Assembly (NCBI GenBank): GCA_048013815.1
Contig: CM106586.1
Location: forward strand, 11,284,001-11,348,000
Direction of reading: 5' to 3'
DNA length: 64,000 bases
From: Setoptus koraiensis
Taxonomy: Eukaryota; Animalia; Arthropoda
Shown here: positions 19,770-64,000 of the stretch, in pieces
Layout of the letters: each line of letters starts with the position of its first letter
Numbering within the stretch: position 1 is the first letter of the stretch
Position numbers and translations under genes: made by a program
The notes under the pieces: generated by a model
The model's input: only the letters and a program-made list of their open reading frames with translations
The model's database searches: none
What the model was told of the DNA's origin: nothing

Positions 19770-22141
19770 TTTCCTAAATGTATAACAATAACCTGTCAAT
19801 ATGTATTGAATGGGGGCTGTAGTGAATCTGCAACAATAAATATAATAACAATCTTATCCCTGTGTGTGCTCTCAGCTGTCCGACGGTGAGGTCAAATTAA
19901 AAAAGAATGAATAAATAATCTCCTAACAGTGTTAATATAATAATAGCAATAGTTTCTGGAATGTGGCGACTCGATATGGTTGTTGGGATAACAGACTATG
20001 CTTATTACTGTTGTTATTGATTCTATTACTAATAATATTACTATTAATTATGTTGATGTGTTAACGTAATGTTTTCAATACTGTTTTGCGGGCCTCCCCC
20101 GAACGACGATGACTAAATCCTCTTATCTGCGTCTCCAATTGTGGGTGTGTTGCTAAGCGATGCGACACTACTGATCCGATGCCAGGCTGGCGGCCGCTCA
20201 CACAAGTTCAACGATAGTGGTCGAGATGATAAATAATAAATTATATCATCACCATTGTGGGAAGGTCAGATAATCCCAGAGAAATAATAATAACGATAGA
20301 GATGATAATATACACACAGTAGACTCACATCGTCGAGGAGTAAAGCTGTTAGAAGGTCTAGGCAAACTATTTTGGTCGACGCTCACACACAAACAACAAA
20401 TAATAATGTCAGATGATTGCGTTATCTGTGTGTTCCATATTGTGTGGCTCGCGAGCCACCGGCACAGCAGCTGTTACTCTGGTTGCCAGGGTCTGTTCTG
20501 ATCGAAATTTAATTGCGCACAGGGTCCGCTAGGCGCGCTGTCCACGCAGACACGGCGAACGTTGGCTGCCTCAAAACGACACCGAGAGCGCCGCCCTCGC
20601 GGAAACAGTTCGTACCAGTTTGGCAAACTCAATCACAGTGGTTGTGCTCAGTGCACAGTGTGTGCCGCAACAGCAGCAGACACTCTGTGCAGCAAATTTG
20701 AATTTGATTGGGCGCCAATATCAGCTCGACGGGCCAGCCAGTTGGCTGGCCCAGTTGTATAAATCCGCGATAAATAAATGCGACGCAGATTATTTGCAGT
20801 CTCACAATCGGTGCCGATCAGAAGCCGAGCCGCCAACAAGTGGCTCGGCAAAAAGTCAAATATCTATAGTTGCTCTTTTGCATGATTTTAGCTGATGTTG
20901 TCGGTGCAATTACCTGAATGATAACATGATCAGTTGGTATTATTCAACCGAAAGAAACTGCGGCCGTCGCTCATGCCAACACCGGCTCGGCAAGACTGCT
21001 GGCAAGCTCGCCGGGCAGCACAGCTTTGTGTGTATATGAGCGTGTGTGTGTGTGTATCAGTCTCCATAAATGAATGTCGTCGGTGATGATTTTCATTTTA
21101 GAGAGATGATGTTGATGTTGTTGTTACGTCATCATCACCATAAGCTGTGTGTGTGTCGGTGTGTGTGTGTCGGTGTAATGGTATTAGGCTGACTGACATT
21201 TATAGCCGGCTCATCAGTCAGTCAACAATCGAACGGATTGAGCACAACAACATATCGGCTTGAGTGAGTTATCTTGGAGTTATCTGTGTGGTTACGCTCA
21301 CTTGTCAGGTTGAGTAGAGGCAACTGGCAATTTCTGGCTGGCAATATTGAGCCGGCAATGAGCGCTCATTGGCGGCTGCTCAGACAGGCTGCTGGTGTCT
21401 AATTGTGGACAGAGAAACTTTTCTCCGAACAAGAAAAGAATAGACAGGCCATCGATAGACGAGCGATAATTGTTGGCAGTAACGCTGTTGCGAGCGTTGC
21501 CATTGGAGCGGGTTAGCGAGTCGCTATGTCGTGGATGAGGCACGAGATGGAGGAAGAGTGTCGGAGTTGCGTACATTGTAACTTGTGCCGGTGTGTGTGT
21601 GTCTGGCATGTTTGCACCAGATTATTGGCGTTCGTCGCCGGGATAAATGGGTCTGATTTGGCTCGTCGAGCTCGTTTAGCACATTTGCAACAGCATTGCG
21701 GATTGTTTATCGGTCTGCACGCCGGCACCACAACAACAGCAGCAGCAACAACAACAACAACAGCAACAACACCGACAACGACAACAACAACATTTAGCAG
21801 ATAGTTGACAATTCTGCCAATTGTATCAGAAACATGTGGTTGTTGATGCTGTTTTTGGTTAGCTGGCTGGATTGGCATGAGCAAGGCGGCCCATGTTGCA
21901 TGGGCATGTACGAGTGGCGGCCGTGGCAAGATATGGGCATGGGATTGGCACGCAATTGGCAAGCGGCGCGCCGATCATGGCCAACGTTGAGAGATGTCAA
22001 GCGTGTTGGCACCGAAAACAAATTGTTATATCATTCCGATAATCTCCGCCGACTGCGGCTTTGTATCGTGTGTTATCGTGAACAGGCTCGAGTTGTCAAC
22101 GATGCCTGCCATATCGCCTACTACATGTATACTACACGCAC

Positions 22142-32251: not shown

Positions 32252-35200
32252 CGATAATAACAATGATAATTATGCGATGCAGCTACACGACTTGCACGAC
32301 ATTCAAGATTTCCTCGACGCGCACCACGAGACATCGGACAGTGAGCCAGTGTCGCAACAGCAACAGCAGCAACAACAACACACCAATTACGACTGCTCCA
32401 GAGCTATCGACGACGACTATTATCTACTAAATTATTATCCCATCGCACAACACACCAGCGCCAGCGGCAGCAAGCCAGTGACGGGCGCAATTGATGCAGC
32501 GGGCGCCACCAACAAACCGCCAGTTGACACAGTGAAACATTCCAATGGGGCCCAATCACTCGCAAATCAAATAGAGCGGCCAGACAACGACAATCTTGTG
32601 AACCACAAGAGCCGACACAAACTCGAACAACAACACCAACAACATCCGCAACAGCAGCCAATGTCGGCCGCTAATTACTGCAACCGGCAACAATTAATTA
32701 AGCCGAGCGACGCTATGCTAAAGAGCAGCACAAATAAAACCACCAAGTCCAACACCGGCGCAACAGCCACAGCTACCTCAGTTGCCAGCATGGCAGACAG
32801 CCAACAAAACAGGCCAATCAATAGTTTAGACGTGCCAGATATGGGGCCGACGTTCAAAGGCGAGCACAACAACAACAACAGACAGGTAGCAAACGAGAAC
32901 GGCGCCAACAATTATGCGTCAGGCGCGCATAGGTACCAGCTCGATCAGCATGCCAACCGCATAACAGCCGAGAATAACAATAACAGCAGCAGATATTGTC
33001 ATGCAAGCCAGATATCAAAAATGTTGTTTGATTGCTCGCCGCGTCAAAGTTACAACAGCAACAACAACAACAACAACAACAACAACAGCAACAACAACAA
33101 CAGCGGCAACAACAACAATAAGCATCAATTGTATCACGAGATAGATTCGTCGTTTGGTCTCGCCGAGGAGAGCAGTCCCTTCAGCAGTGGTAAGTCATTA
33201 ATTAGGCTCATTTGCATGCGCTGCTACATTATTGCGTCATTATGATCATTACAAGACGGGTGGTGGGTTGTCGAGCGTTGCCGTGTTGAGTGTAGTCGCG
33301 TGGGCGCGCTAGCTACTTAATTAAGGCCACCGCGTTGAGACCTAATGCCTAATTAGCGACAATTAGCCGGACCGCGTCGGTTGCGTCGGTCGCTTCGGTT
33401 GCGTCGGTCGCGTCGGTTGCGTCGGTCGCTTCGGTTGCGTCGGTCGCTTCGGTTGCGTCGGTCGCTTCGGCTGCGTCGGTCGCTTCGGCTGCGTCGGTCG
33501 CTTCGGCTGCGTCGGTTGCGCCGTTTGAGTCAGTTGCGTCGGCCGCATCGGTGAGACAACAACGCCAACAATCATCTAAAATCAAGTGGCGATAAATAGA
33601 CGAATGTGTGTCAGACGAGGTGCCGAGTTGACGGCGCACAAGCGAGCACTTTTGCCGGTTAGCTGTCGTTTGTGATCGTTGGCCATGCTCGGCCATGCTC
33701 GACTCACACTGTCGCCGATCACAATTGCGACATTGCCGGAATTTCGCATAGTGACACTTATCGAGGGATTGCATGTTTGTAAGTTTGTCAGTTCTATAAT
33801 TACAAGTCAAATTTTAAATTGTTCTAATGTCAGCTCAAATACAATCGGCGTGATTAATCGGTGGCGAGCCTGATGCGATTATGTAATATGCGCAAGCACG
33901 ACCACGACCACGACAATGATGCGAACAACAAATGTAAACATTGACAGTAGCTCACTGTCAGTGGCAGCTCGCGAGTTTAGCTGCGTCTCTCAACGTCAAT
34001 TGAGACACGGAGCAAATGCAATTACCTAAAATGATTGCTCCTATTCCATCCCACTGTTAGAGAGAAAGAGAAGGAGGCCCGAGCGTTAAAGAGCTCGAGA
34101 GGCAGTGATCAGCTCGCAATAGTGAAAGAGAGAAGGTCATCAAGTGGATGACATTTGGCCACTGTCGTAACCAGTTTACCTGTCAGTCATTATCGTGCGC
34201 TGTTGGCAAGAAAGCAGACTGCAGCTCATTGTTGACTCATTAAACGACTTGCCGAGAGTGGCTCGTAATGGTGATAATCGCAACGAGCCATTGATAACAA
34301 ACGCTCTATTCAGCTCTACGCGTCTCTGTCAATTGTGATTACTAATCAACTTGCTGCTTTGCTGTCTTTGTCTCTGTTGTCTCATTTAGGTTCGGATCGC
34401 GAATCTATAGTATCAAACACAAGCACGTGCACTGTGCCACAAGAGCGACTAGCCGTCCGACTGACGCCACAATCACATGTTGTGTCATCGATATCGGCAT
34501 TAAACAATCTGCTAACTAATGACAAACGTGCCACTGCAAATAATCACCACGATAGTCAGAGTTATGATTGCGATAAACAACAACAACAACAACAGCACCG
34601 ACTAACGTCAATTCGCGTCGACATGCATCACGACGAATATCAGCAACAATTTGACCGGCAACAGCAACTGCAATCGTCGTCGTCGTCGTCATCATCGTCG
34701 TCTTCGTCGTCGTCGTCGTTGTTGGGCAACAATGCCAATGACGCAAATGGTCGCATGCAAATTCAATTAGGAGCTAATATGTGTTCGACAATAGCAACAA
34801 GCAACAGCAACAAAAAACATCATTCTGACACTGCTGACACCAGTTACCAAAGCAATGGCTACACCAGCCCTGACACACACACAACAACTACAACCGACAA
34901 CAACAACAGGTTAATTACGGAGGATAATGTTAATTACGAGCCATCGTCTTCTGTCGCAGTCGAAGAGGCGACAGTTGGTGACAACGACAGTCAGCAGATC
35001 AAAACAAAGCCACATGACACCCTACTGACGAATCGCCTTCGACACCAGCCAGCTACGACAACCACAATTCATCATCAACAACAATCTTTGTATCATCATG
35101 ACGATGGCGCCAGAAAGCAGCTAGCTAGCGTGCAGCATCAACAGCAAGCGGCATCATCATCGCTCATCATGATGGAAAGTGGTGACGAGCAACGGTTTAC

Positions 35201-38118
35201 AATCGGCGAACAACAACAACAACAACAATTGCAATATCACAATGACAACAACAATTGTTACACAAGTCACAGGTACAATTTACAAACTGTCACAAATTGC
35301 ACTGGACCAGCTCAGCATCATCATCAACATCAGCATCATTTCATGTCGTCGGCTTTGGATCAGCAAGACCAGGAGGACCAGCACGAGGACAGTCTGTTGT
35401 TGACGCATCAAGATCTAATGATGCAATCGTTAAATGAGACACACAACACAGACAAAGACAGTGACTACATTGGCTCTAGTCCGGTATTTATTTTAAATGA
35501 TTTCAATGATACGATTGTTGACAACAGCAGACATTGTAACCATGACAACAACAATCATAGACAATCATTCGACAACTTATTTGAACACAAACAACACACG
35601 CCAAATAATAACAACAACGGAGATGATCATGATGACGATCAAGATGACAAAACACAACAAAAACATGCCAATAAACTAAACAGCTTGCTTGACCAGTCAG
35701 GCCAGCATTACCAGCAGCAGCAGCGGTCGTCGTCTATCGAGCCGAGGCTACACCAAGATTATCAACACAAACAATTGCTGACCAACGGTAAATGTTTGAG
35801 TGATATAGGCGCGATTATGCAAAATAAATTGTTGTCGCCACACTATGACGATGACTTCATGCTAGATGCTGATAATAAACGACACGATGAACAAATCAAC
35901 TATAGTCAGGATAAATATGATCAAAGGACCATGTTCGATCAGCAACACAATGTTTACCTCAATCATCACCTAGAACGTCCGTTGTTGTCCATGTCGGCGG
36001 GCACATTGTTGTCTAGGAATCAAGATAATAATAGTAATTCACTAATTAAATTGGCAACAAGCAGCTCTTCTCTCATTATAAAGGGCGACCCAGCCGGCAG
36101 TTTGCCATTGATTGGCACGGACTATGACGACCATGTGATACATTCAGACACAGGCACTGCAACCATGTTGGAGGAGGCCAAAACTAAATTGGAGACACAC
36201 AAACAACAATCTGTGGATATCATGATTAGACACAACCACTATTGTCATCAGTCATTCGAACAACCGGGCGACGATAATAACAATAATACAAATATATCGC
36301 ATCAGCAACGATTGACGGGTGATGGCCAATCAATTGGTTCTCTCAACAACAACAGCACTAACAACAACAACAACAACAACAACGATTTAGACGGGCAACA
36401 AGCCAACAATCTGATCGATGATGACACCATTGTGATAGAGGGCGAGAATGACTTGGTGAGATTCTCAAATAACAGCACTAATCAATCGCGTCACAACCAC
36501 CACCACCACCACCACAACCACCACCACGATGATGATTTAGGCGTACAAACTAGTTACATGTCACCTATGACCGTTGTTCAAAACAAGCTGCAACAACAAT
36601 CAACAAATGACCACCTACATCATTCACAGCATCATTATAGCAACCACCATCACAACCACCACCACCACCAACATCAACACGATGCAACATCACCTGACGA
36701 AACGACAGCGACAGCATTAATTGATGACGCTAATCATCATCATGCGTCTGTTGATTGTCAGACAGCATCTCAACAACGGCCGCCTCATCACTATGAACAC
36801 CTCAACAATCAACATCAGCAACATTACCAACAACATTATTATCAATACCAGACAGGATATCATCACGATTTGCACCATCACGAACAACAGGATCACCATC
36901 AGTTGACCGTGTTGGACCAGCATCAATATAATAATAACAATAATAATGATATGCAGCATCAAATAATTAGATTAGAACAACAACAACAACATCAACAACA
37001 GGCAACCTCAACGACAAATAGTGGCAATAATAATTCTGCTGTTGACACAATGAACAAATTATCCCCAAACAATAACAGTATTCAGAGGCGCGGGCAGATG
37101 GCGCCAGTGGCCTATAATACCAATGGTCAAACGGCATTGAGTCATGACAACAGTGCCAATTTTCACTACTGTCATCAGAATGATACACACATAGGTGGCG
37201 CCACCAATGACCACAGAACACCGTCATCGACATCAATATCAGCAACCACCATAACAAATCAACACCAACACCACCACCATCAACAACAACAACAACAACA
37301 ACATCATCATCATCATCATCTACAAACTAATGGCCAATCACAACAATTAAAGGGTGTCAATAATAATTACAATCAGAACAACGATGGCAGTAAATTGTCG
37401 TTGACGCAATCAATTCAAAACGACAACTCAAACCCAGCCAATCATTATATAGATCAGCAACAACAAACAAAACTAGGCCAACAGCCGGTCAAGTATCCTA
37501 TAAAGGGGCGTCGGGGTAGGCCTCGCAAAAAGGCCTTGCGTATAAAGAGTAGGTATCGATTTGAGACCATATAATAATGAGATTATTGGCTAACCATTAT
37601 GATGGCGTAACCTTAGCAGTAAATTAATTAATTTATTATTATCATAATATTTTATACATATCTATTTGCAGATAAAGGCAATGGAAAGTTGTGGGAATTC
37701 ATCAGAGATCTACTACTAAACGATCAAACCAATCCCAGCTACATTAGATGGGAAAGGAGGGAGGACGGTGTGTTTAAGTTTGTCAAATCGGATCAAGTGG
37801 CTAGGATGTGGGGCGAACGAAAACAAAATCCAAAAATGACCTACGAGAAACTGAGCAGGGCCATGAGGTAAGTCTCTTGAACATTATTATTATTATTATC
37901 ATTATTATTATCGTTGTTAGCTATGAATTCGTCACTTACTTAAATCATCCACTACTACCTACTGCTACTACTTCAGATACTACTACAAGAGCAAGGTGCT
38001 CCTTCCGGTGTTCGGTCGCAGGCTAGTCTACAAGTTTGGACCTCATGCAAGCGGATGGAGGTTGCAACCGAACAATTTGCATAATCATTCATCTCAGCAT
38101 CAAGAGGCTCCAAATTGA
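32106..38118 (+). CDS. ETS transcription factor, ESE (ELF3/ELF5/EHF)-like, ~1,526 aa; exons 32106-33189, 34390-37548, 37672-37867, 37977-38118
   Basis: Spliced ETS domain KLWEFIRDLLLNDQTNPSYIRWERREDGVFKFVKSDQVARMWGERKQNPKMTYEKLSRAMR|YYYKSKVLLPVFGRRLVYKFGPHASGW. All junctions are GT-AG and phase-consistent (1,1,2). AT-hook-like GRRGRPRKK lies just upstream of the ETS domain. The 5'-most exon assignment is less certain than the ETS exons. Confidence 0.85.
33374..33520. repeat. 18-bp intronic minisatellite (GCGTCGGTCGCTTCGG(T/C)T) ~x8
   Basis: Tandem copies inside the first ETS intron. Confidence 0.9.
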
Positions 38119-38661
38119 CCAACTATGAAGTGTGCAGAAATTTTGGTTTCTCTACGCCGGAACAATTACAATTAGCAACAGTTTATCTATCCTTAATTAA
38201 TTATTATCATTACTATATCATCATTAATGCCATTGCTATTATTGCCCCATCAATCACTATCATATTATTATTACGATGATTATTGATTTTACAATTACTA
38301 CAACTATTAATGTCAACATGATTGGATTTGACCAAAAGATTGAAACCTACACAACCCACAAAACTTAAGAAGCAAAGCTATTAAACTCCTTTATCTGCAA
38401 AATATGTTGAATGCTCGTTTTGGTCATACATTTACGATATATAAGTGTACATTTTCTTAAGTCTAGCTAGATACATATAATTTTTTTTTTTTTTGTGACT
38501 AGTTACATTTTCATTGATTGCATATTGATAGTAGTTATAACGAATCTTTCTCCGTCACGTGCGACAGTTTCGCAACTGATACTTTTGAGTCCACATTATG
38601 TTGTTTGCACGACTAGACAAATGATTAATTAGGATTTATTTTGTTGTTTGTTGTATGAAAG

Positions 38662-41600
38662 TTATACGTTCTTGTTAGCGCTCTCCTCCATTGCTTCGAC
38701 CATTAGCTCTCTCTGACCAACTGTGTTGTACATTGACTGCCTGAATTCAGCTGGTTGATTGACATTGGCATTGGACGATGGCGAGCCAGTAGATCGTGTC
38801 GTATCTAGTGCGCTGTTGCAATTCTTAATTGTTTGATTACCGAATCTTTGCGGAACCATTAGTGAACTCAATGCTGAATTGGGAAAATTTCCTAGCATGT
38901 AAGCTAGCCACGGATGGTTTCTCTGCTGAGTTTGTAGAAATAGTTGCTGTTGATGATGAGCCATGTTGTTGTAGAAGCTTAATTGTAATTTGTTCATTGT
39001 TGCCAAAGAGGGATAAGGCGAAGTGTCCAGAGAAGCGGACCCCACCATGGGGTTTTGATCATTGGGAAATCCTAGAGAGTTCAGTGATATAGATTGATCG
39101 CCTCCAGTGAGATCCACTTGATTATGCGGAAGACGACTCGCCAAAGCAGAATGATTTAAGAAGGGCAAGGAACCAGAATTGGATTGATTTCGTTGTTGTT
39201 TTTGATGCTGATAGAGGTCAGCAGATGCAAACGGATTTTGTGGATTGATTGAGTTTGCCATAACAAAATTATCTGATATAGGACCGTGTTTAAAATTAAT
39301 GAATGCATTGGTCGAGTCATATTTTTCCGACAACTTCTTATAATCAGACTGAAAATTTTCAATTGATGTTGCACTTGATGAGAGGCCTGGATTGTTACTG
39401 CTACTACTACTGCTACAACTACTATTGTTGACTATCATCGGATTGGCGCAATCAGTAGCAATCCGATGATAGTCAGAATGATAGTCATCTAAGGCAGCTT
39501 TTATAATATCCTGATTATTCACCTGAGTCAAATTCATTATATGAGTTGCAAAGGCATTTATTACAAGCTTGGGGTCGGTGTTATTTAAATTTTGTGACGA
39601 ACGGTATTGATTGAACAGCATGTTCCAGACGTTAGTGGGTTGTTGGTTATCTGAGGACACTTTATCTGAATTGGACATCAATTGCATGTCGTCCGGCATT
39701 TGTGATGGGGCAGCTAACTTGCCACAATCTGTTGCTAAACGGGACGGACCCATGTTGTTTATGTTGACTGCAGCCGATGGCGGCAAAGACTTTAATTGAG
39801 ATTCGTGCTTTTCGTAGCCAATTGAATCTTTTTTCCCATCATCCAATCTTATTCTATTATGATGGAACGATGACGAATCCGACACTTCAATCATGGTTCT
39901 AGGAATTATACTCATGCCTAAGTGATTGTTGCTGTGAAGATTGATTTCGCCTAGTTTTGTTTTGTTATCATTCGAAGTAGTCGGCGGATAATTATGATAA
40001 TCGTGCTGGGCAATCTTGATACAATCCGTTGGATGGGGTCGTTGATAACTTATGTCTGAGTTATTTAAGATGTGTGTTTCTACTCCTTCCATGCGAGGAT
40101 ACCGTTGACCGTCGTTCTTACGATCATTATTCGTAGAGCTATCTTCATTGCTTTGATTGGTCTCTTGACGCTGGACACAATTTTCTTCCTCTAAATCATT
40201 CACATGACTCTTAACATCTTTTACTGAACCACAACCTTTTATCCAATGGTCTCCGGGAGATCTAGCTTGTGCCTGTGAGATTGGTTGATTGTAACTGCTA
40301 CCATTGATACTGCTGGAGCAGATTGAATACCTGTGATTATTATCTGAATATTCACCAAGACTAGCTATTCGATTCTCGTTTGTTGCGTAGCAACTCATTT
40401 CAAGGTCTATTCCTTTTCTCTTCATTCTGCTGTCGTCTGGCACCTCGCCGCCTCTACTGTTCCCACAAACATTATGAGATGAGTGATTTGCGGTTGATTC
40501 GATAGGTTGAGAACATAGCGAGGCTATTGTCAATGGATTGATTGAATTAAAAGATTGCTCCTGTACCTCTTCGTTGACATTTGTTGCGGTTTCATTGTTA
40601 GGTATTCGAGCATTCAAGAGAACCTTTGATCCATTGGCGTTGTCATTGTTAAATTGTTTTTGTTTGTGCTCATTAGTGAAACCATGATTATTGATTACTG
40701 CCTTATTGCTGAATGAATCCCCCACTTTGGCCTTGTTATTGCTATTGTTGATACTATTATGCATTCTTTGTTGTATTGCGCCTGTTTGTTGATAGTGGCG
40801 GCGTTGATTTTTTTTACCTGTTGTTACCAGTTGTTTTCTATCAATTGTTTGCTGTTTGATAGTGGTAGATATTGTCATAGATGATGTTGTTGTTGTCGAT
40901 GATGATATTGACGGTGAAACACTAACAACCTCAACGAATGAGTCATCAGATGAAGAACTGTCATCATCTTGTATCATATAGGAATGTTTGTCTTGGATAA
41001 ATTGATTATTATCGTTAGGAATCGATTGACGAGTTATAGGCTCGCTATAATTATGATTGTTACTGTTATGGTTATATGATATTGTCTTATTTGCATAATT
41101 GTTACCCAAGTTGTATTGCTGATGATGATGGTGACCCATCCTGAGATCTTGCTGAAGTTTTAGTGTTTCCACATGGGGAGCCGTTTGATGCACATTGTTG
41201 TTTCCGCTGCTTGCACTAATATTGTTGTTATTAAAACCGGATCGACTGGTTCTATCAAAGTGAATACGATTGACATCGTTGTCACTACTTGAACTAGTGT
41301 TATAATTATTGTTGTTGTTTCTATTGCTAACTCCCAGCGACCTTGTTTTTTCCTTTGTTGCATGTTTTATCTGATGCATCGCCGATGGTAGTAATTGGTG
41401 CTCAAGCAAATGATGGTGGTTGCTTGCTCCATTACTATTTACAACAATTAAATTATTAATTAATTTTGATGATGATCTCTGATGGATAACTAAAGGGTTC
41501 ATGCTGCTTGAAGGAAGTCCAGTGTCTATTGATGCGCCTCTGGCGCCATCTGGCGCTAGATTGGCTTTTTGGCCTGTATCAATCCTGTGTTTGGGCTTTC

Positions 41601-44600
41601 TCGGTCCGCGCTCGTGTTGAACAGCTTTTGTCACCATTGGCGCGCATTTTTTTTGAAAACCATAATCATTTTTATGCCAACCGCACAGTCATTATAGGAT
41701 ATAATAAATTATAGGAAGGTGGTTAATTGTAAAGAGCTTGATAATAAATAAATGATAATTGGAGATAATTTACTCAGACAGTCGCTAAATAGTTAAATAA
41801 TTATCAAAGATCGGATGAATCTCACATAAAATCCATTGAAAGAGAGTATCATCAGACAAAAGAGCCATGGACGAGTAGTAACCAATATTGGTGGTCAGTT
41901 TCACCATTCAAAGCCATTAAAAATCCCTCTTATTATATTTGGAAAGAGAACGAGCAAGCATACATGGGGGCTCATAATTGTACTTGTTATTATGGCAGCA
42001 TGCCGAGCCATAAGCAAGAGATTATAATCAATATAAAATAGGTAATGCAGGCAGTAATATTATCATCAACGAGATATATTAGATCCAACAATTCAATAAT
42101 CCAGATGAATACTAGTAAAAAGGAAAAGAGAGATGTATTGCTAACTATCAGTTGCTCGCTCAAAGTCCATTGCACCAGGCCTACCATCACGATCCTATCA
42201 AAATAGACACTAACCGTGATAGAAAGCAACTTAATCCGTCTTCTGTACGCGACATCGGTAGTTCTGGGACAAGTGTTTGACTTGGTGCAAGTATTCCCTT
42301 GCTTCTAATAATCGTGGCACGATACGATCGGTCTTATATAATCCATTACTGACCGAATAATGGATAATATTACCAGGCCCTACTAGTTTTCAACAACTCA
42401 GCAAACAATGACAAGTACCAGTAGAGCACACGATGACAAAATTAAGATGTATGCTATGCTGACAATAGTAAGATTATGCTATGTTCTCTTGGTCATGTGT
42501 GCCCTCATTGGTTAAGTAAAACTAACCAAATCAAAACAATAACATGACATCACGACAGAGCAAATCAGATAGAACTTATAAGGACAAGTTCCATGGATCA
42601 ATCCGTATTAATTCTTCAACAAACAAGACTCAACGTGGAATCGAATATTGACAAAGCGACTGTTCGTCTCTATTGTTATCCAAACCACAGCTTTGTTGGG
42701 GAATGGTTGGCCCTCATCACCAGTAACTTGCATTCATAGTCGATAGTATTAAGGAAGAATCGGTCCCTAAACGCAATTGAATTTATCTGAATCGCAAATC
42801 GATATGGTGATTTGGGTGCAACAATACTGCTGCTATGAACCGCAGTTATGGGCACACCATCAACAACAAAAAATGGAGAAACTTGCATACATAACTTGCG
42901 AGCCAATCTCTGTCAATGATGAATTCGTCATGTTATATAGAGAGCGTGTAGGTATGGATAATGTAGATATCATGTTTTATGAAGCTTTGGTCATGGTTGA
43001 TCATTTTCATTGCACGAATAGTATAATTAGCGCCATAAAGTGCCATGGGTGACGCCCATTAGTTATGCTTAATTTGGAAAAACTGATTATTTATAACAAC
43101 AGTATTATTATCTCTTCTGGTAATGGTGTGCGCTCTACAGTTATTTGTTGCTAATATACCACACGCTGATTAATGTGCTGGTGTGATGTGTATATAACTT
43201 ACAACAAGGCCGCATCTATTGTGTGGTTTATATAATATATAGTTGGAGGTTTGATAGATTACTTGTTCATGACATGAATTCAGCTTAACCAATTCAGCGG
43301 CGATCTAAAGAGTGCACACAAACCACCGGAGAAGCGTAACTAATGCGTAACTGATCATGAATATAGTCGGATTAACTCTGTAGTCGAGTTACATCACATC
43401 AATTTTCCTAAGGAAAACATAGGGTGATATTAGACATGCGGGATCAAGAAGTGAGGGACAAGAGGAGAGAGGCTAGCGTGATGAGGTTGGCCGCAAACTA
43501 CTATCGTGATGCATATGGTAACCGCTAGTGGTTATAACCGTTGATACAAAAAGGCAGAACAAGTGCACAGTTCAGCAAGTTGTGCACCCGATTAGGAGCT
43601 CATTGTGTTCTAATCGATCGCATTACATCATGGGTTGTCGTACTAAGCAAATAAAAGTGAAACAGCCACTTGAATTTCCATCATCGTCAGTAGGAAAAGC
43701 AGCCATGCACCACGATATGGGTGCTGACAAATGGATGAATGAGAGCAAGTGAGCCAAGTGGGCCAGTCAGACAATCAGACAACCAAACTGGCAGACGACC
43801 TTTGGTTAGTTTAAAGCAGAATTGTAAATGGTGGACCCAGACACAATAATGACTAGGTGTGCCACCATCCGAGTGAAGCTCTTGAAAGAGCAGAATCATT
43901 TGTGTCTCTCAATGGATTACTATTTAGGTGGTCACACAAACGCACCTACATAGAAACAAGCACACACATGATAGCTTTTTATTCATCTTGGACTCGCTTC
44001 CTAACCAAACGATGAGATTGGCATTAATGGAGAATGTTACAGATGTCAGTGAATGGTAACGCTGACAAGCATGCAAGAAGCGACGGGCGTTTGATGCCGA
44101 TTGGTCCAAATTGATTTGAGAGGAACCTCAAACAAGGATGAGCAACGGGATAGAGCCAGAGAAAAGGCACTTGATCGATCAGCCTCTGATAATGTATTAA
44201 TGATTTCGTATGTTGAATCAACTAACCACCACCACACTACCACAATGGATCGCATAATAATATTGGATAGATGCTCGAGGGAAAATCAGCATACGTTACT
44301 TTTCTCTCGCTAGGAATTGTAGCCGCTTCATCAGCTCAATAATCAGATGGTCGCGAGATAAATATCGCTTATCGGGCCACATAGTTAACAAATGAATTTA
44401 CGTGGTAATGATGATTTACAATAGCCTAGCAATGTTATATAACCAATTCGACTAATTCGGTTAAGGCTATTATACAATGGAGTTTACGATAGAGTGATGA
44501 CGCAAACACTCGCACACACCATTATTACAACACAAAGAGAGCATGGTGTCAACATATTATCATCATGATTAGTGGACCATACAAAGTGACGGCCCCCTTC

Positions 44601-46511
44601 CTCTCGCCGTCCATATCTCATATCGGCTCATCTTTCCTCACCTACTAACAGGACCAATGGCCAAACAACTATTGGCGCGTGTAGTTTAGCGTGCGGATGT
44701 ACCCGTTTTGGTTTAATTTAACCAACGCCGCCGCCGACTGCTGCTGCCGCAGTAGCGGCATGTTGCGGGCATGAATTATGTGAGCAGTGGCGTAATTACT
44801 GAGAAATAGGACGTTGGTTGGCGGTGGCTCAAGAATATAAACATGGATTGACCGCTCATTTCATTTTATCATTGTGTGTTTGTATCAAATTAGCTCTATC
44901 CATCTCGACCGCTGTAGTTGTTGTTGTGTAAGTGTTTCTATAAACAGCAACTACTATATAAAAGCGATTATAAGTGACCAGTGGGTAGGAGGATCAGCGA
45001 AGAGAGTTGGACAACATAAATCATATCACGTGCTTAAGTGTGTAGTACCTGGCGTGCGTGGTCACTCGGTCAGATGGTAACTGGTACACAGCGATCTATT
45101 GGTTGGCAATTGGTTTTGTCGGTCGGGCTGGCAACAACACTGAATGACTAGGGTAAATATACGATGAAGGTGGTCATGTTCATGACCGTAAAATCATGAT
45201 GATGATGATAATCAGATGAAGCGAACGCGAGCGCCAATAGAAATCATCAACTTTGCGCTAACTCTGTTAGCGCGAAGAAGAATTGAGAGAGAAGAGGCAA
45301 GAATTGCTCAATTGGTTGTTGGTGGGTTGGTTGTTAGATAAGAATTATTATTATGTGATCGCGGTGATCGTCAGAATTGAATTGAGTGGTGGCCTGCAGC
45401 TAGTTCGTGCTGTCACTCAACGTCCACAGACACACAATTCCATCAAATCTCCCTCTGTTCTCTAATCTAATCTACCATATTCGTGCTGCCCACAACCGGT
45501 CAGTGGGTTGGCTGCCCGGCCAGTCAACCAACAAACATCACTCGACTGACCAACCCTGACGTGAGATGTTTACCGGTCTAACGGTATCAGCGGCAGCAGC
45601 AGCACCATCATCACCATCACCAGCAACGCAACAACAACAATAACAACAGCAGCAGAACGGAGAAGATTTATTTAAAAATTCCAGCTCATCCTGCGTGGCT
45701 ACTCTACCGAACCGTCGGCCACCAGAGCCAAACAACAACAACAACACACACACACTCACACAGATTACTAAACTAATCTTGCACTACTCACCATCTCGGT
45801 TCATTCCGGCATTGAAACATTTCCTTAGGCGACAAGCCCGGCAGTGATTTCGATGAGTCCTGTCCACTGGACACTGTCCGTGCACTGATTGTTGTTGTTT
45901 GTGTTTTTCGTGTTTATAATAAGTGTGGCGCAACCGCCACACAAACGATAGAGGGAAAGTATAAATGTATTAATAGTATAAGTCCATTTGTTTTTGGATT
46001 GTAGGAGGATTATATCGTCGCAACACTGATTTGTCACTTGCTCATTTCAGCCACAAATATGACGCCCCTGGCCGTACTTGTACCCACACCCACGCACTAG
46101 CACGACACCATAAGTAACAGCAGATTATCTACTTAGGTGAGGTTATCACCACACATCTCATCATCATATAGGTCTGGCTCGCATATATTTAAATGTTCGC
46201 ATGACCACCAGTATAATAGATTATAATTTCGATACTTACTGCCACCTTGGGCTTTGCATAGGTAGCGCCTGTTCCTATGTATGCTTCTCTTGAAGAACCC
46301 TGAACAGCCTGGATATATCATATACATATATATGCAATGCAAAAATGGTCGATGATTAGCCGAAGCTGATGGAGAGTCTAATAGTGCTGGCTATTATATC
46401 AAAGAGGACACTTTGTTAGTACAAACTCACCGTCACAACTGTATATTCCGTAGTGCTTTCCCGAGCTTTTGTCGCCGCATACCAAACAGTCTACATCTAA
46501 AAGTCGATCTC
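38662..46511 (-). CDS. dsf: Nuclear receptor dissatisfaction-like (NR2E group); exons 46431-46511, 46240-46308, 45792-45884, 38662-41624; first exon(s) unresolved; no LBD visible
   Basis: Spliced [30 protein letters not shown]|[23 protein letters not shown]|[31 protein letters not shown]|[12 protein letters not shown]. All junctions are GT-AG and phase 1. GDRLLD, RSIHRNR and RGPRKPK match dsf rather than tll (RGPRNST) or PNR (NERQPR). Confidence 0.88.
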
Positions 46512-49500
46512 CTAACAGTTTAGCTGTTTTTAAGACGAGTTTTGTCGAGACGATCATTGATGATGATTGAGGGAGAGAGAGAGAGAGTTTCAATTTGTTT
46601 GGAGGCAGGCTCATTAGATCAACAGCGCGTGACTTTTTTGATTACACAAGATTGATGATGCGACACACAATCGATTTGCTATCGCTAACAACTTACGTTT
46701 TTCCATATTTTTTTACTTTTTGTAAGATTATCCAAGTATTTTCATTCTTGACAGTCAAATTGTTTTTCGCTACGATGGTTGGCTGTATTTCGCTACTGAT
46801 AACTAGACACACCATAAGAGTTTCAAAAGAGTTTGTGTGCAGCCGAATGTCGATCTCGTTTGTGAGTGTTGCTCGTTCAGCTTGATTACTGTTAACTTGA
46901 TTATAATTCGACAAAGTAATTTAATTCAATTTTCATTGCCACTGTGGAGGCTCGTCACTAATAGGTTGAATAATAATGAGATTACGACGAAATACTGAAC
47001 AAACTTGCTTATGGTGTTGGGGCTGTGTGACCTATAAAAGTAATCACTGTTGAAATGACTTGCCATATATTGAGTGCTGGTGGGTGAATAATGTAACTTC
47101 TTGACGAGCTGTTATTGGCGGCGAAAAAGTGGTAGCCAAAGTAGGACTAACATATTTATGTTTGTCTATAGCTTGATCTCATAATTGTTAGTAGCGTATC
47201 GGTCATTTGGAAATTGTGTAATGGTTACCTTGTTGTGGACATGCGCGCCCCACAAAACAAGTCGCGTTTGCGCACACAATAACGCGCGCAATATCGCCGC
47301 TGCTTTGTGACTGGCAAACAAAATGTAATTTGGCCCCATAGAAACAGCACAGATAGTATACATCGGACCTGTCATGCATGTGGCACGACAATCATAGAGG
47401 TGACACTTTTATCTGGTTACTTGACGCAAGTAATGCCAAGCACACGACGAAATAGCGTTTTTATCCGGATGCCAGTTGGAAGTGCAACCGTTGAACACAA
47501 ACTGGCAACTAGAGGCCGGCTCATCTCCTAACCTAACCGAGATGCCTAGCGGTACAACTAGTGATATGAGTATGGCTGGCGGTATGAGTATGGCTGGTGG
47601 CACGGGTATGGCGATAGCTTCTTAGCGCATCGACAGAGACGTAACAGCGGCCCAAACAGTCAAGTGTTGTTGATCAAGCTTGCGCTTGCTACAATTGTTG
47701 TGCCATGTTACAATGTTATGTCATCATGTCATGGCACGAATAATGCGATGAAATGTTGCTGTTGTTTTATGTAAATTGTGAGCGGCTCTCACTATTGCCG
47801 ACCCAACGTCACTCACGAGCATCGGCATAACGTATCAGCAAAGAAGGTTGAATGTCGTAACATCAGAGCATCTTAACACCGCGCTAGCGGCTACGCGATA
47901 CGCGCCCAATGGCGTGATGCTGAAACAGCAGCGATCGATGCATACTGTCAGTTATATGTTATAGGCAATGTAGTTAGATGATTGTTTACTTGTTGTCGCT
48001 GGCGAGGTTGTTGTTGTGGTTGTTGTTGTTGTTGGTGTTGTTGGTGTTGTTGTTGGTGTTGTTGTTGTTGTTGTTGCTGTTGTTGTTGTTGTTGTTGGCG
48101 AGGCTGCTGCTGGCGCGGTTGTTGTCGGTGGCAAGCTTACGTTGTATTGGCCATATAGTTGGACTTTTGGGTTGCGCTGCTGGCAACAAGCAAAGAGATG
48201 AAAGTTAGCTAGCTGATAAATAAAATGTGCTCGCGTGTGTGTCCGGCATCGGCAAACATTTGGCCAGTAAAAATTTGACCATATGGAGTGGGCAAGAAGA
48301 ATAAACAGCAAGAGCGAACGCTCCCGATTTAGTCGCCATTCACAACGGCACGCTAACGCCGTTACACATATAGGCCGACTTCGGTACATTCACCTATAAG
48401 ACTAGCGACTAACGACTAACACTGTCCCAAACTACTACTTACGTCATCATCACCAAACAATGACTGCACTAGGCCCAAATTTGGCCAACAACTGGCTAAC
48501 TGTCTAACAGCAAACAACGCGAGTTAACATGAGCTTCTACTGATAACTGTAACAAGTTAATGGTAGTAGTTGTTGTAATCGATTTTATCGCCTGGCCAAA
48601 CCCGGCCATTCGATCATCATCACAACAAGCTCCTCTCTCAGTCACTAATAATTCAACTGTTCCCGTCCGACGGTTAGTGTTGACCAGCAACTGTCTGTTC
48701 TGTTTGTTGTTCGCTCTTTGGTGTTTCCTCTCTCGCTCTCTCTCTCTCCCTCTCTCTCTAACTTACACCGTGAGTTGCACACCGAAACACAAACATGACT
48801 GCTGTACATAACGACTATTATATAACGGCCACTGTCGTATGAGAGACGCGTTAAGATCATTTCATTACCTGATTAATCTTGCGCCTTAACCTATAGTGGC
48901 AAGCTAGTTGAAGCATTGTTGTTGTCATAGGACGTAAGAGATGGTTAGGTAGAGAATAACTAGATATATTCCCAGTCTTATCGGCAGAGGAGCCACTTCC
49001 TGACATGACATTAACCGAGCCAGCATAAACGAGCCTCGCCTAGCTGTATGCACCAAGCCAGGCCTCATAGAACTCAACAGAACAGTTTGTATCGCCGTCA
49101 ACATGACAGTAATCATTATTCGGACACATCATCGAGGCTACACTTGTAAGACATGCAAATAGCGTGCCAGTGAAACAAGGCAAATAATCATATTATTAAT
49201 ACACAACATCACGAGAGCACTAAAAAGCTAGATGGACTGGTTACATACAGCAACAACAACAGCAACAAAGCGACCCTATATCGATACTGCGGTTGCTTCA
49301 GGCAATGAATCATCAAGGATTAAGGTGTACTGCAGCACAACTGAACAACATTACACAATGTAGGTGTAGAGTGCATTAAGAGACAATTGGGTTTTATTTA
49401 TATTTATCTTTCGGCAAAAACGAAACGGTAAATCGATCTTGAAACAAGTGAAACAGCCAACAAAATTTATGCACATACAACAACAAAAGACTAACTCATG

Positions 49501-49547: not shown

Positions 49548-52500
49548 TTATGTAACTCGTGAAGGTTTTGGAGGTAAAGAGGGTGGTGTTTGGTTGCTGT
49601 CAAATGGCTTATCGGCACCACCCAACGACGACTTATTCTTGCTATTTGTTTGCAAGGCCAAATCGGACCGCTGTTGCTGCTGCCGTTGTTTAACTATTGG
49701 CGAGCATGCCGGATAGCAATTATCACTATAACGTCTAGTGGCTAATGTGTCGCTACTACCCCTATTATTATAGGACACATCGAGAAGACTTTGTTGACGC
49801 TGCTGTTGTAGCGCTTCTTTGTTGTTGTTGTTTGTTGCTGACGACAAATTCTTTGATTGATTAATAGGCGTCGGTGGTGGTAGCTTATCGTTCCGTTGTT
49901 GCAACATTAAGTCTGCTCGAAACGGAATAGGTGGCATTCTGATTTCAGTATTACTTGCTACTAAGCAATGACTATTTGTGGTAGCAGCACTCTGGTTAGA
50001 GCACATAATACTATTATTTGGCACACTTTGAGCGAGCGTTGTTGGTGTTGTTGGAGTGGTAATCATACAGTTGCCATTAGTATTGTTACCAGTAGTTGTA
50101 TTTAAAGTGTCTATTGAGCCCGAACGTTCCCAAAGCTGATGTACGAACAGTTGATCATCATTTAATTCGTTGTCCGAGTCATTATAGGCACTATTGGGTG
50201 TTAAATTAACAAAATTGTTACCTAGTGAATTCATTGCGCAATTATCATCGTCTAAGACATCTCCATAGAATTGTGACAAGCTGGCCTGCTCACGATTCAA
50301 CTTGTTTTGCGAGTATCTAGGGGAACAAATGTTGGCCCTTCGTGACTTAAACTTGTCTTTTAAAAACTTGTGTATGGCTTCTTTCGATTTGGACCCAATC
50401 AAAGAACTCGAACTGAGGTTTAGAGTGCTTCCACATTCCATAGAATTAGTTGAAGTCTTTCGTTGATCATTCGGAATATCGTTCGTTTTCAAGCTAGGAG
50501 GTGAGCCTATATTTTCGGTTGCACGCATTTCTATAGATGAGGATCTGGGCTGGTGTAGACTAGCTTGGCTCGAATTATTTGATTTTTGTGTCAACGAAAG
50601 ACTTTTGAAGCCACTGATTTCGCTTTTCCTATCAAGCGAACTAGGAGTAGTGTCTCTGGAATTACTCTTGGTAAGTGGACAAAAAGAAGATTTCGCTTTA
50701 TTCGTACGTAACTTCAATGTGCTTGATCGTGATCTTCTGCTAGAGCAATTCGAATTAATAGTGGAGTAAATTCCATACTTCTCCAGTATATGAGCTTTCA
50801 ATTTTTGAAACGATTCTTCAAGGTGCTGGTGTAGGGGCCTCATTTCATCAACTACTCTCTGATTGTGGATGGCTAAACCTTTCTCTAAAAGAGGCACCTG
50901 GGCAGCTATTAAACATTTCAATTTCCTCTTGTGATCCAATTCTGTTGGATCAGCGAGATTGCTGTCACTAAAGAAAGCCTGCTCGTATCTAGATATACCA
51001 CCATTCACAGCAGCGTCGATCATACCGGCTAGCTGCTGCCCTAACGATCTAACGTCTCCTTTAACATTATTAGTGTGATCTTGAATCAAGCGTTCCAATC
51101 TGGTATTTGTTGTAACTATATCCTCTATCGCGTTCTCTATCGGGCTAACTATAATCGTCTCGACAGATGTGACAGGGAAAAAATAGGAGAGACCAGGTAA
51201 TTTATGCTGCGTTTGCAATATTATTTTCTCCCGCCACATATTGGCAAATTCGTCTTCACTTCTAGATAGAAGTTGTCTTCGATCCTCATCATTATCGATC
51301 AATGAAACAATCGGTGGTGGCTTCATTTTTCGCATATACATGAATTTGTTAACATCATTCGCTTTATAAAAATTAGTTATTCGTGTGTCCACTTGTTGTC
51401 CATTGAATCGATCAAACAATTGCATAACGGGCTGACATGAACTGATTTGAATGTGGCATTCATCAGACTCCACAATGTCAGGCCCAGGTGGTCCGATAAA
51501 TGGTACTACTTTACTATCATTGAAATGTACCATAATTCTGGTTTGAAAGTCGCCCAGATTCTCATAGGCGGCACCTCTAAACAACAGAGTTGAGTTTCTT
51601 AAGAACAAGGGGAATCCTTTTCCATAAAAAGAAATTCTGAAATAGCTGGGCTCTGGCCTCAGATGAGTCTCCACTATTTTCTCGTAGAAAATTGACATTT
51701 TCAGTAGGAGTTTACTCATTTTAGAGTATTCAAAAGTGTGATCTCCATACTGTTGACACAATTCTCTACACAGAGGTAGACCAGCCTCCCAAAGTTGACC
51801 TTGTTCGAATAAATCAAGTATAGTAAGATATAACAACTCTTTCAACTTCCTTTGGCTGACTGATGATGTAGATCCTATTTGTTGCGGCATCACTGCATGA
51901 CAAGCCGAAATGTGGTGGTTGTCGATAACTTCATCCAGCCAAGACAAAAGCCTTGCATGTCTCAAAAGTACGAAACCAGCTTCAATCAGGTTATTTGTCT
52001 TGACGTGAATATAGTACAATTTATACAGATAGTATACAAATAAGTCTTTGTGGTCTATAACATTTTCAAAGAAATCCAACAGTCTTAGGAGGCATGATAT
52101 TTGCAACAGAATATTATCTTTCACAAATCTAAGGTCTAACATAAGTTGAATGAGTCCGTTTATGGCACTTTCATATAGGTGAATCTGATAGGTGAATTGA
52201 GAATCATAAAAAATAGGCGCAGCCACTGTTGACGTAATGTTGCTAGAGTTTCCGCTCACAGAGAATGATATTCTGGAATCTGTGTCACCAAGTCCCATTT
52301 CGAGAAATTTGTGAAGATGAGTCACGGTTCCTTTCAAAAAATTCTGAAAAGAACCTTTGTTAGACGTGGAACTGTTAAAACTTTCTGCAAAACTTTTACC
52401 GTAAATCAAACTATTGATAGATCGGTTGCTTCGAAAGGATTCTGTTCTGATTCCAAGTTTAAAATTTCCTGATTCAGTGTTCCTAAGCAACGATTGATCT

Positions 52501-53534
52501 CCAAAAGAATTTGTATCACTTCTGAGCATGGAGCAATGCCTGCAATCGCTTCCAGATTCCTTGGTTATAGTTGAACTACTCTGAGCGGCGTCGCAAATGT
52601 AAACAGAGCCATCTTGAGAGCTACTAGAGGATTGTGCGTATTCGGCTTGAATCATTTTCAAAAACATCGGCACAACAGTAGATCGTATATCTTCGTTTGA
52701 CACTAGCGACAATTGTAGCAGATCTCCAAGGAGTTCGTTGTTTAACTTTTGCAATGACTCTAAGCTAGAACTTATGCTGTCCCAAGAAAGCCTCATGTCT
52801 TTGATGACTAGTAGACGAATATCACCGAAAGAAGATACTAATCTGTCCCTTTGCAAGTCTGTCATGTCCTCCAGTTGTAATGTTTTGTGATTGGCTATTG
52901 AGAGGGAACATTTAAAATAGTCTATCCAGATGCTGTGCTGAAAATTTTGACAGCGGAAATTGATTCTCAAAGCGCTCGATATACTTGTTAGTGATTTGGC
53001 TATAACAGAAATTTGTGAGATAATTTTATCGTCATGACTTTTCGTGTAAGTTTCGGCTGCAGCGTCCCCACAATCTTGATTGAATTTTCCAATGGTTTGG
53101 GATAGATTGTTATTGCCACTGGATGAGATGGACAAGAATAAAAACAATAAACTTTTGATAAATTCCGATAGCTCCTGCCTATTAGAGAAGCTTTCAAAGT
53201 AATAGTCGAAATGCTGACTTTCCATAAGTCCTAAAACGTTTATAAATAGTGTTATGAGGTGATCATAATAGTTCTGAAGGTCATCTTTTTTGCTAATAGA
53301 TATGTAGATTGTTTTGACTAACGGATTTAACAATGCGGACGCCAGGTTATGAACATCGTGGTCTCTCTCATCCGTATGTTTGCTGTTGATAACACGGAGC
53401 ATATCGTCAATTCTGGATAGACACATATCTACTTTTTCGTCTCTTTTTTCAGTTTCGCATAAAATCCTGTCCATTTGACTAACGATCACAGGTAATGGCG
53501 GTTTTTCAGCGAAAGGTTGTGTCGCTTCGGACAT
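49548..53534 (-). CDS. Dedicator of cytokinesis DHR-2 Rac GEF, DOCK3/4 (sponge)-like, single 1,328-aa ORF lacking SH3 and DHR-1
   Basis: DHR-2 motifs LWEAGLPLCREL, RPEPSYFRISFYGKGFPLFLRN and GMIDAAVNGGISRYEQAFF (the DAAVNGG form is typical of DOCK3/4). C-terminal PPSLPPKP motif. Confidence 0.85.
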   Translation of the reverse strand: MSEATQPFAEKPPLPVIVSQMDRILCETEKRDEKVDMCLSRIDDMLRVINSKHTDERDHDVHNLASALLNPLVKTIYISISKKDDLQNYYDHLITLFINVLGLMESQHFDYYFESFSNRQELSEFIKSLLFLFLSISSSGNNNLSQTIGKFNQDCGDAAAETYTKSHDDKIISQISVIAKSLTSISSALRINFRCQNFQHSIWIDYFKCSLSIANHKTLQLEDMTDLQRDRLVSSFGDIRLLVIKDMRLSWDSISSSLESLQKLNNELLGDLLQLSLVSNEDIRSTVVPMFLKMIQAEYAQSSSSSQDGSVYICDAAQSSSTITKESGSDCRHCSMLRSDTNSFGDQSLLRNTESGNFKLGIRTESFRSNRSINSLIYGKSFAESFNSSTSNKGSFQNFLKGTVTHLHKFLEMGLGDTDSRISFSVSGNSSNITSTVAAPIFYDSQFTYQIHLYESAINGLIQLMLDLRFVKDNILLQISCLLRLLDFFENVIDHKDLFVYYLYKLYYIHVKTNNLIEAGFVLLRHARLLSWLDEVIDNHHISACHAVMPQQIGSTSSVSQRKLKELLYLTILDLFEQGQLWEAGLPLCRELCQQYGDHTFEYSKMSKLLLKMSIFYEKIVETHLRPEPSYFRISFYGKGFPLFLRNSTLLFRGAAYENLGDFQTRIMVHFNDSKVVPFIGPPGPDIVESDECHIQISSCQPVMQLFDRFNGQQVDTRITNFYKANDVNKFMYMRKMKPPPIVSLIDNDEDRRQLLSRSEDEFANMWREKIILQTQHKLPGLSYFFPVTSVETIIVSPIENAIEDIVTTNTRLERLIQDHTNNVKGDVRSLGQQLAGMIDAAVNGGISRYEQAFFSDSNLADPTELDHKRKLKCLIAAQVPLLEKGLAIHNQRVVDEMRPLHQHLEESFQKLKAHILEKYGIYSTINSNCSSRRSRSSTLKLRTNKAKSSFCPLTKSNSRDTTPSSLDRKSEISGFKSLSLTQKSNNSSQASLHQPRSSSIEMRATENIGSPPSLKTNDIPNDQRKTSTNSMECGSTLNLSSSSLIGSKSKEAIHKFLKDKFKSRRANICSPRYSQNKLNREQASLSQFYGDVLDDDNCAMNSLGNNFVNLTPNSAYNDSDNELNDDQLFVHQLWERSGSIDTLNTTTGNNTNGNCMITTPTTPTTLAQSVPNNSIMCSNQSAATTNSHCLVASNTEIRMPPIPFRADLMLQQRNDKLPPPTPINQSKNLSSATNNNNKEALQQQRQQSLLDVSYNNRGSSDTLATRRYSDNCYPACSPIVKQRQQQQRSDLALQTNSKNKSSLGGADKPFDSNQTPPSLPPKPSRVT

Positions 53535-60286: not shown

Positions 60287-60718
60287 ATGGGGTGCTTTGG
60301 TGTATCAAGTTCTAAAAATGACGCCGAAGAGGATAAACGGCGGAAGGAAGCCAATAAACGTATCGAAAAACAGATACAAAAAGATAAACAAGTCTATCGA
60401 GCCACACATAGATTGTTACTATTGGGCGCTGGTGAATCTGGCAAATCGACAATCGTTAAACAGATGAGGATACTTCACGTTAACGGTTTTAGCGAGGAAG
60501 AAAAGAAACAAAAAATAGAAGATATAAAAAAGAATATTAGAGATGCAATATTAACAATTACCGGTGCAATGAGCACACTGATACCTAGCGTTTCACTTGA
60601 ACATCATGAAAATCAATGGCGCGTCGATTATATACAAGATGTTGCATCTTCGCCAGATTTTGATTACCCGCCCGAATTTTATGAACACACAGAAATACTG
60701 TGGAAAGATAGAGGAGTT
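60287..60718 (+). CDS. GNAS: G protein alpha-s, N-terminal half (MGCFG...ILWKDRGV), continuing as an error-riddled copy to ~61215
   Basis: MGCFG start and [28 protein letters not shown]-loop. After 60718 the sequence still follows Gs-alpha DNA but with dense insertions. Confidence 0.85.
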
Positions 60719-61319: not shown

Positions 61320-62065
61320 AAATCCAATGATTCTCTTAGTCTATTTTGATTAGGGTCCTCACGCAAAACCATATTGTAACTACTACAGGCGGTAACAAAT
61401 ATAATGGCAGTGACATCATTAAAACATTGAATCCACTTTCTACGTTCGTCTCGCTGGCCTCCCACATCAAACATATGGAAATTCACCTTTTCCACTTGGA
61501 ATTTAGTTTCGAATATACCGGATGTCAAAACACGACACCTCAAGATGTCTTGTTCTGTGGGTGTGTAATCAGGCCTTTTAACGATACTAACACGATCTAA
61601 AAAGTATTTAGCACAATCTATTAATTGGTATTCATTTGAGCGTTCAAAGGTTGCTTGAACTCCTCTATCTTTCCACAGTATTTCTGTGTGTTCATAAAAT
61701 TCGGGCGGGTAATCAAAATCTGGCGAAGATGCAACATCTTGTATATAATCGACGCGCCATTGATTTTCATGATGTTCAAGTGAAACGCTAGGTATCAGTG
61801 TGCTCATTGCACCGGTAATTGTTAATATTGCATCTCTAATATTCTTTTTTATATCTTCTATTTTTTGTTTCTTTTCTTCCTCGCTAAAACCGTTAACGTG
61901 AAGTATCCTCATCTGTTTAACGATTGTCGATTTGCCAGATTCACCAGCGCCCAATAGTAACAATCTATGTGTGGCTCGATAGACTTGTTTATCTTTTTGT
62001 ATCTGTTTTTCGATACGTTTATTGGCTTCCTTCCGCCGTTTATCCTCTTCGGCGTCATTTTTTAG
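61320..62065 (-). other. GNAS: Inverted second copy of the Gs-alpha N-terminal two-thirds (probable fold-back artefact)
   Basis: Reverse complement of ~60311-61215. 61320-61729 matches 56854-57263, with one difference that I noticed (HTE versus HSE). Confidence 0.75.

Positions 62066-62129: not shown

Positions 62130-64000
<1,871 letters not shown>

Follow-up and report, generated by a model that had tools for sequence, protein, structure and literature searches.

The locus described here raises the question of whether the dissatisfaction-like (dsf-like) nuclear receptor of the mite Setoptus koraiensis, which carries an intact DNA-binding domain (DBD), genuinely lacks a ligand-binding domain (LBD) or only appears to lack one. 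The gene is located in a stretch of 64,000 nt of contig CM106586.1 (GenBank assembly GCA_048013815.1, positions 11,284,001 to 11,348,000 of the forward strand), and this whole stretch is referred to below as the window. The comparative analysis of this gene and of its counterpart in a sister species points to a probable answer, namely that a mite with a small genome here carries its dissatisfaction (NR2E4) orthologue, in which the LBD was lost in a lineage-specific manner, and that selection keeps the gene as a transcription factor composed of a DBD plus a long tail. The gene model was derived from genomic DNA, and Pfam and similarity searches were made exon by exon.

An original prediction, made by a model from the DNA letters of the window, had the DBD spliced from three small exons into one 2,963-nt terminal exon, and this architecture holds. 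The receptor gene comprises four exons on the minus strand, running from ~46.5 kb down to 38.66 kb of the window and separated by introns of 122, 355 and 4167 nt, all three of the GT-AG type and with phases that close. Every exon keeps its splice sites in the sister species, in which the locus is represented by a 10.7-kb Logan contig (L001). The parts of the gene are as follows.

~46523-46431, minus strand: exon 1, encoding the first zinc finger (Pfam zf-C4, 3.8e-07), with a GTGAGT donor at 46430 that is kept in L001.
46308-46240, minus strand: exon 2, encoding the end of the P-box, the inter-finger linker and the start of the D-box (Pfam zf-C4, 1.2e-04), with an AG acceptor and a GTAAGT donor kept in L001 and mostly synonymous substitutions.
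45884-45792, minus strand: exon 3, encoding the remaining D-box and the second zinc finger (read from the translation), with its acceptor and GTGAGT donor kept in L001 and 8 of 9 substitutions synonymous.
45791-41625, minus strand: intron 3, 4,167 nt, in which several non-coding blocks are conserved.
41624-38662, minus strand: terminal exon, encoding the T-box and C-terminal extension, followed by a tail of 975 residues, many of them N, S, Q or H, with the TAA stop at 38664-38662.

The terminal exon, whose acceptor is at 41625, amounts to 987 codons plus TAA, in agreement with the ~987 residues and the stop at 38662 that had been predicted, and it is contained in an open reading frame (ORF) of 991 aa (38662..41637, minus strand). 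The predicted compositional bias is likewise evident (N+S+Q+H 38%, hydrophobic residues 23% of the tail). At the other end of the gene, in-frame ATGs occur near exon 1 of the window (46614 and about 46557). Since the ORF around DBD exon 1 of the sister species (L001 1756-1986) is devoid of an in-frame ATG, and since the similarity between the two species begins exactly at a cag acceptor (46526-46524), the model probably lacks one more upstream coding exon in both species; two conserved blocks (47149-47281 and 48105-48339) are candidates for this role.

The assignment to the DSF type is based on the DBD. Matches to PF00105 (zf-C4) were obtained on exons 1 and 2, each above the curated cut-off, and the cysteines of the second finger were read in exon 3; all eight cysteines of the two C4 zinc fingers that define the nuclear receptor superfamily are present. 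The NR2E1 subclass (Tll/Tlx/Dsf/NHR-67) is marked by Asp19 and Ile29 of the DBD, and its members are told apart by D-box length (cysteines counted), with 9 residues for Tll, 11 for Dsf and 12 for NHR-67, as compared with 8 in NR2E3 (DeMeo et al. 2008, PMC2225407). Direct reading of the DBD encoded here gives C18-D19-G20 and S28-I29, hence both subclass residues, and a D-box (CKAQGGMHGQC) of 11 residues, the Dsf value. This D-box spans the exon 2/3 junction, across which splice sites, frame and residues are kept in L001. A comparison by hand with two trematode DSF and two trematode TLL DBDs (supplement of PMC8363021) yielded 52 identical residues of 70 against CsDSF in an ungapped hand count. 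His30, the strings SIH and KCF.A.M, and the 9 residues between the D-box cysteines are common to the DBD in question and to trematode DSF, while the trematode TLL domains have CDGCAG, SIRRNR, KCLEVGM and other D-box lengths. Because the D-box length and these diagnostic residues match DSF, the assignment of the gene as dsf-like, and to DSF over Tailless, is supported, in line with the original prediction of a dsf-like receptor with an intact DBD.

The reality of the tail and of its stop can be judged from the sister species. A word search with the tail returned a single relative, a protein of 1013 aa (P0001; 60% identity, 100% coverage, same end position), which is encoded on L001. This protein was also the only match in an exhaustive phmmer search of the tail against 1.84 billion representative proteins and in a word search with residues 1-120 at E ≤ 10. 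Over window positions 46528-37459, the order of L001 is collinear with that of the present contig (72.7% DNA identity), and L001 carries the DBD exon, the long ORF and, about 520 nt past its stop, the exons of a convergent ETS gene, so that the tail-to-tail arrangement of receptor and ETS gene is kept in both species. The stops of the two ORFs fall on the same aligned codon (TAA in the window, TAG in the sister species), and in the pairwise alignment similarity collapses after the stop, save for one identical block of 20 nt. The features found on this side of the gene are as follows.

38119..38661, no strand assigned: spacer that parts the stops of the receptor and the ETS gene, which meet tail to tail, 543 nt (about 520 nt in L001).
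38611-38630, minus strand: 20-nt block AATTAATCATTTGTCTAGTC (given on the gene's strand), without a difference between the two species, located 32 nt past the stop where the remaining 3' flank has diverged.
34335-38118, plus strand: convergent ETS gene, consisting of a low-complexity ORF of 1079 aa without a Pfam family and then two small Ets-domain exons (37689-37871 and 37975-38118; Ets domain 1.4e-23), with its stop at 38116-38118.

Comparison of the terminal exon of the window with that of L001 gave synonymous and non-synonymous divergences (dS and dN) of 0.67 and 0.19, respectively, and a dN/dS of 0.285 (bootstrap 95% confidence interval, CI, 0.235-0.349). The most constrained third of the tail is formed by residues 661-991, with a dN/dS of 0.198 (CI 0.133-0.280), and the ratio for the last 100 codons is 0.183. 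Indels in the terminal exon are multiples of three in 30 of 32 cases (the other two measure 7 and 8 nt), as opposed to 29 of 94 in intron 3, which is what non-coding DNA would give; indels of the spacer are mixed. Conserved islands of the tail lie at residues about 40-105, 225-295, 665-725, 765-795 and 875-990, and substitutions in the DBD are nearly all synonymous. Given that both the stop and the synteny are kept in the sister species, that purifying selection extends up to the stop and that indels come in threes, the comparison indicates that the gene is real and maintained by selection, and that the protein truly ends at the TAA.

A broad search for an LBD gave consistently negative results. 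Testing the protein against the Hormone_recep family (PF00104), a check proposed along with the original prediction, produced no match on the tail of either orthologue at E ≤ 10; thus, the C-terminal LBD of a canonical receptor was not found by this route, and the 991-aa ORF has no Pfam family of any kind. Neither phmmer with the last 352 residues nor a profile built from both complete tails, each run against all PDB sequences, matched a nuclear-receptor LBD to the C-terminal part, and the language-model (Atlas) features of residues 661-991 did not fall in any receptor cluster, the best value (0.75) being that of a disordered tail of a T-box factor. The absence of an LBD signature, claimed at the outset, was borne out in six frames of the window, in which the pattern F/W-A-K-x-x-P-x-F..L...D-Q..LL and its relaxed forms had no match. 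Downstream of the stop, the ten minus-strand ORFs of greatest length showed no Hormone_recep domain (only an ArfGap domain was found there), and none of the 117 ORFs of at least 60 aa listed downstream resembles a receptor sequence. The distance to the convergent ETS stop, put at ~540 bp and considered too short for an LBD, is indeed 543 nt. A break in the assembly hiding LBD exons between the receptor and the ETS gene, which had been named as a way in which the prediction could fail, is excluded: contigs of two public runs (one of them labelled as another organism, with two substitutions plus a single indel in an intron) and the sister-species contig run uninterrupted, with no joint, through the stop and across the intergenic stretch. 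Overall, these results support the conclusion that there is no recognisable LBD, and that ahead of the ETS gene there is neither room for one nor a gap in the assembly that could hide it.

The loss of an LBD in this gene has a close published precedent. In the eriophyoid mite Aculops lycopersici, which has a genome of 32.5 Mb, the receptors E75, DSF, HR4, HR38, HR51 and SVP are without a predicted LBD (Greenhalgh et al. 2020, eLife 9:e56689, PMC7738191), and for DSF an LBD was predicted by neither PfamScan nor CD-search, while the DSF homologues of Tetranychus urticae and Dermatophagoides pteronyssinus do have a predicted LBD (PMC7738191). The remark in the original prediction that mites with reduced genomes have been reported to lose LBDs is thereby confirmed, with DSF itself among the six receptors named, and most of the novelty is gone. 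What the two cases share is a DSF-type receptor without a predicted LBD in a mite whose genome is very small; they differ in that another species is involved and that the exhaustive phmmer search linked no A. lycopersici tail to the tail described here. In addition, the A. lycopersici case consists of a failed domain prediction only, whereas here an orthologue, the stop, synteny and selection are available besides. Eriophyoid mites also show a 3'-biased loss of introns (PMC7738191), a trend into which the intronless 3' terminal exon of the receptor fits. A flatworm source, hinted at early on by composition and by the Atlas hit of the neighbouring DOCK gene, was dropped in view of the agreement with the eriophyoid pattern of LBD losses.

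Several observations weigh against the loss of the LBD and the selective maintenance of the tail as set out above. When identity is compared by bins, the nucleotide identity of the terminal exon is not above that of intron 3, and the constraint on the tail is therefore argued from the dN/dS contrast and the preservation of the frame, and not from raw identity. RNA runs were searched for the locus and none was found to contain it; the three runs compared with it consist of genomic contigs and show no joints. Transcript ends and splicing are read from genomic DNA, and downstream ORFs shorter than 60 aa were checked by signature patterns only. Within the tail, constraint is strongest in the C-terminal third, and AlphaFold modelling of the last 352 residues returned scattered helices (about nine), with a mean predicted local distance difference test score (pLDDT) of 35.8 and a predicted template modelling score of 0.19, residues ~31-64 of the fragment alone reaching a pLDDT of 61-67; the alignment used for this model consisted of two sequences, and its low pLDDT is weak evidence and no proof of disorder. 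A very degenerate remnant of an LBD may be present in the C-terminal third.

The alternative that survives best, though we regard it as improbable, develops this last point: the C-terminal ~330 residues would be a cryptic, extremely diverged LBD that is split by low-complexity inserts and still folds as a co-regulator docking domain. The low dN/dS of the region, its predicted helices and the better-scored segment are compatible with such a domain, as is its position, which equals that of the LBD in canonical DSF. A further point in its favour is the very end of the protein, LMVEAM, which resembles the helix of activation function 2 (AF-2; PhiPhi-x-E-PhiPhi-like). The original prediction had seen no AF-2 helix; LMVEAM was given no weight, because it reads LMVDTM in the orthologue and no LBD body precedes it. 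Apart from this, a cryptic LBD is contradicted by the lack of any PF00104 signal in either species, by the failure of both sequence and profile searches to find an LBD in PDB, by the language-model features, by the low mean pLDDT and by the composition of the C-terminal part (27% hydrophobic, 39% N/S/Q/H). A second view of the same constrained region, which has somewhat better prospects but is still to be taken as tentative, is that residues ~661-991 (dN/dS 0.20) constitute a new lineage-specific effector module replacing the co-regulator docking of the lost LBD.

Within the preferred reading of a receptor reduced to a DBD and a tail, the original prediction had gone one step further and proposed a knirps-like convergence, the tail repressing its targets via Groucho (through LTIASLC) and CtBP (through QVDLT). 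Knirps, Knrl and Eagle (NR0A) of insects also combine a DBD with the absence of an LBD, their output depends on short co-repressor motifs in a non-globular tail, and DBD-only receptors occur in arthropods and nematodes. The idea gains from DSF-class receptors being repressors and from the LTIASLC string (residues 369-375), which is identical in both species, albeit within a generally conserved block. This eh1-like candidate is conserved, but it has Leu where eh1 (engrailed homology 1) has its key, anchoring Phe, and fits a relaxed eh1 pattern only, not the F-S/T-I-x-x-I/L-L/M of Groucho-dependent repressors. The QVDLT candidate, a relaxed PxDLS, is not conserved and reads QLELE in the orthologue. 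Strict eh1, WRPW, PxDLS and LxxLL motifs have no match anywhere in the tail. Moreover, NR0A receptors have their own type of DBD with a kni-box, together with the CtBP motif P-x-D-L-S, whereas the gene described here is an NR2E member by its DBD, would have lost its LBD secondarily, and has a Knirps-type CtBP motif that is absent or not conserved. Convergence on Knirps by way of these motifs is accordingly a weak proposal, and we consider it unlikely.

Still less credit can be given to an LBD encoded by distant exons (within the ETS gene, past it or at a greater distance) and reached from a donor inside the terminal exon, the LBD-less form being one isoform. The absence of the locus from the RNA runs and the restriction of the check on the shortest ORFs to signature patterns leave some space for such exons, but selection and frame are kept up to the conserved stop with no decay past any internal point, and both species have the stop, as well as the convergent ETS gene, at the same place. 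Six-frame signature searches and the largest downstream minus-strand ORFs gave no LBD, as noted, and in A. lycopersici tBLASTn with the T. urticae receptors overlapped existing receptor gene models only (PMC7738191). Finally, the notion that the long ORF is a functionless relic of a truncated, decaying receptor gene, to which the detection of tail homologues in the sister species only and the exon identity no higher than that of the intron might lend some colour, has next to no chance in view of a 991-codon ORF that is open in both species at a dS of about 0.67, a dN/dS whose upper limit is 0.35, the contrast in indels between exon and intron, and DBD substitutions that are almost all synonymous.

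Taken as a DSF protein without an LBD, the receptor can be placed among its closest relatives. It resembles Drosophila Dissatisfaction (NR2E4) and trematode DSF in Asp19, Ile29, the D-box of 11, His30 and KCF.A.M, followed by a T-box, and differs from canonical DSF, which ends in an LBD, in that none is detectable. A very long region after the DBD is found in Drosophila DSF, too. With Tailless/TLX (NR2E1/2) it has in common the P-box type CDGCSG, a T-box and probably the preference for AAGTCA, and it is set apart from Tailless by a D-box of 11 residues vs. 9 and by SIH and KCF.A.M in place of SIRRNR and KCLEVGM. In Tll and TLX, the LBD binds co-repressors of the Atrophin type.

A tentative outline of how an LBD-less DSF might work can be drawn from these comparisons. 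Judging from Asp19, the receptor would be expected to bind AAGTCA-type half-sites, as do Tll and Dsf. It would act without any ligand, and its regulatory output would come from the short conserved islands in the disordered tail and not from the co-repressor surface of an LBD. The sign of this output would most likely be repression, by analogy with Drosophila DSF, because DSF is described as a repressor in 10.1101/2021.08.09.455671, which cites Pitman et al. 2002 on this point.

Some non-coding features of the locus deserve mention in their own right. In intron 3, the blocks 45480-45390, 45102-45009, 44849-44753, 42620-42524 and 42425-42327 are 83-88% identical between the species, i.e., at or above the level of the exon. 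A hidden exon in these blocks was considered and rejected, as their indels are not in threes and their gaps are many; they match no Rfam family, and their probable role is that of regulatory elements, conserved in a gene of development. The 20-nt block AATTAATCATTTGTCTAGTC in the 3' flank, with an AATAAA just upstream of it in the window only, is a probable candidate for a regulatory or processing element of the 3' untranslated region.

Elsewhere in the window, long intronless 3' exons are typical: one ORF of 1328 aa (49548-53534, minus strand) takes in the C-terminal half of a DOCK protein, with TPR_DOCK and lobes A, B and C of DHR-2, the ETS gene has its ORF of 1079 aa, and the receptor has all of its introns at the 5' end, a pattern matching that described for eriophyoid mites in PMC7738191. 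The ArfGap-domain gene (Pfam 1.8e-40) is likewise a single ORF, of 431 aa (18561-19853, minus strand). About 27 kb from the dsf-like gene, an ORF at 11525-12529 (plus strand) encodes a DM domain (Pfam DM 3.7e-13; DMRT/doublesex type). Drosophila dsx and dsf both act in sexual behaviour circuits; the linkage of the DM-domain gene and dsf may be a matter of chance. A perfect inverted repeat of 405 nt (60314-60718 and 61658-62062) contains a second copy of the 5' portion of a G-alpha gene and directly adjoins a run of poly-C exceeding 1.8 kb (62140-64000, GC 0.90); by their sequence, the repeat and the tract look like an assembly artefact within the scaffold (a foldback read plus homopolymer junk). 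A 500-N assembly gap (3924-4423) lies in the repeat-rich first 10 kb.

With regard to the biology of these mites, the case extends the published LBD-less DSF of a gall mite, the loss of the LBD in this gene and clade being already in the literature. What is added is a second orthologue together with a conserved stop, synteny and a constrained tail, with the consequence that the LBD-less DSF of one gall-mite annotation is not an artefact of its gene model and that two further genomes carry an LBD-less DSF. Should the constrained C-terminal residues turn out to be an effector module, a whole group of gall-mite receptors (among them DSF, Tll, HR4 and HR38) would have had their control shifted from the LBD to the tail. 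Eriophyoid receptors thus provide a natural experiment on an NR2E receptor without an LBD, in which the conserved islands of the tail are marked for testing.

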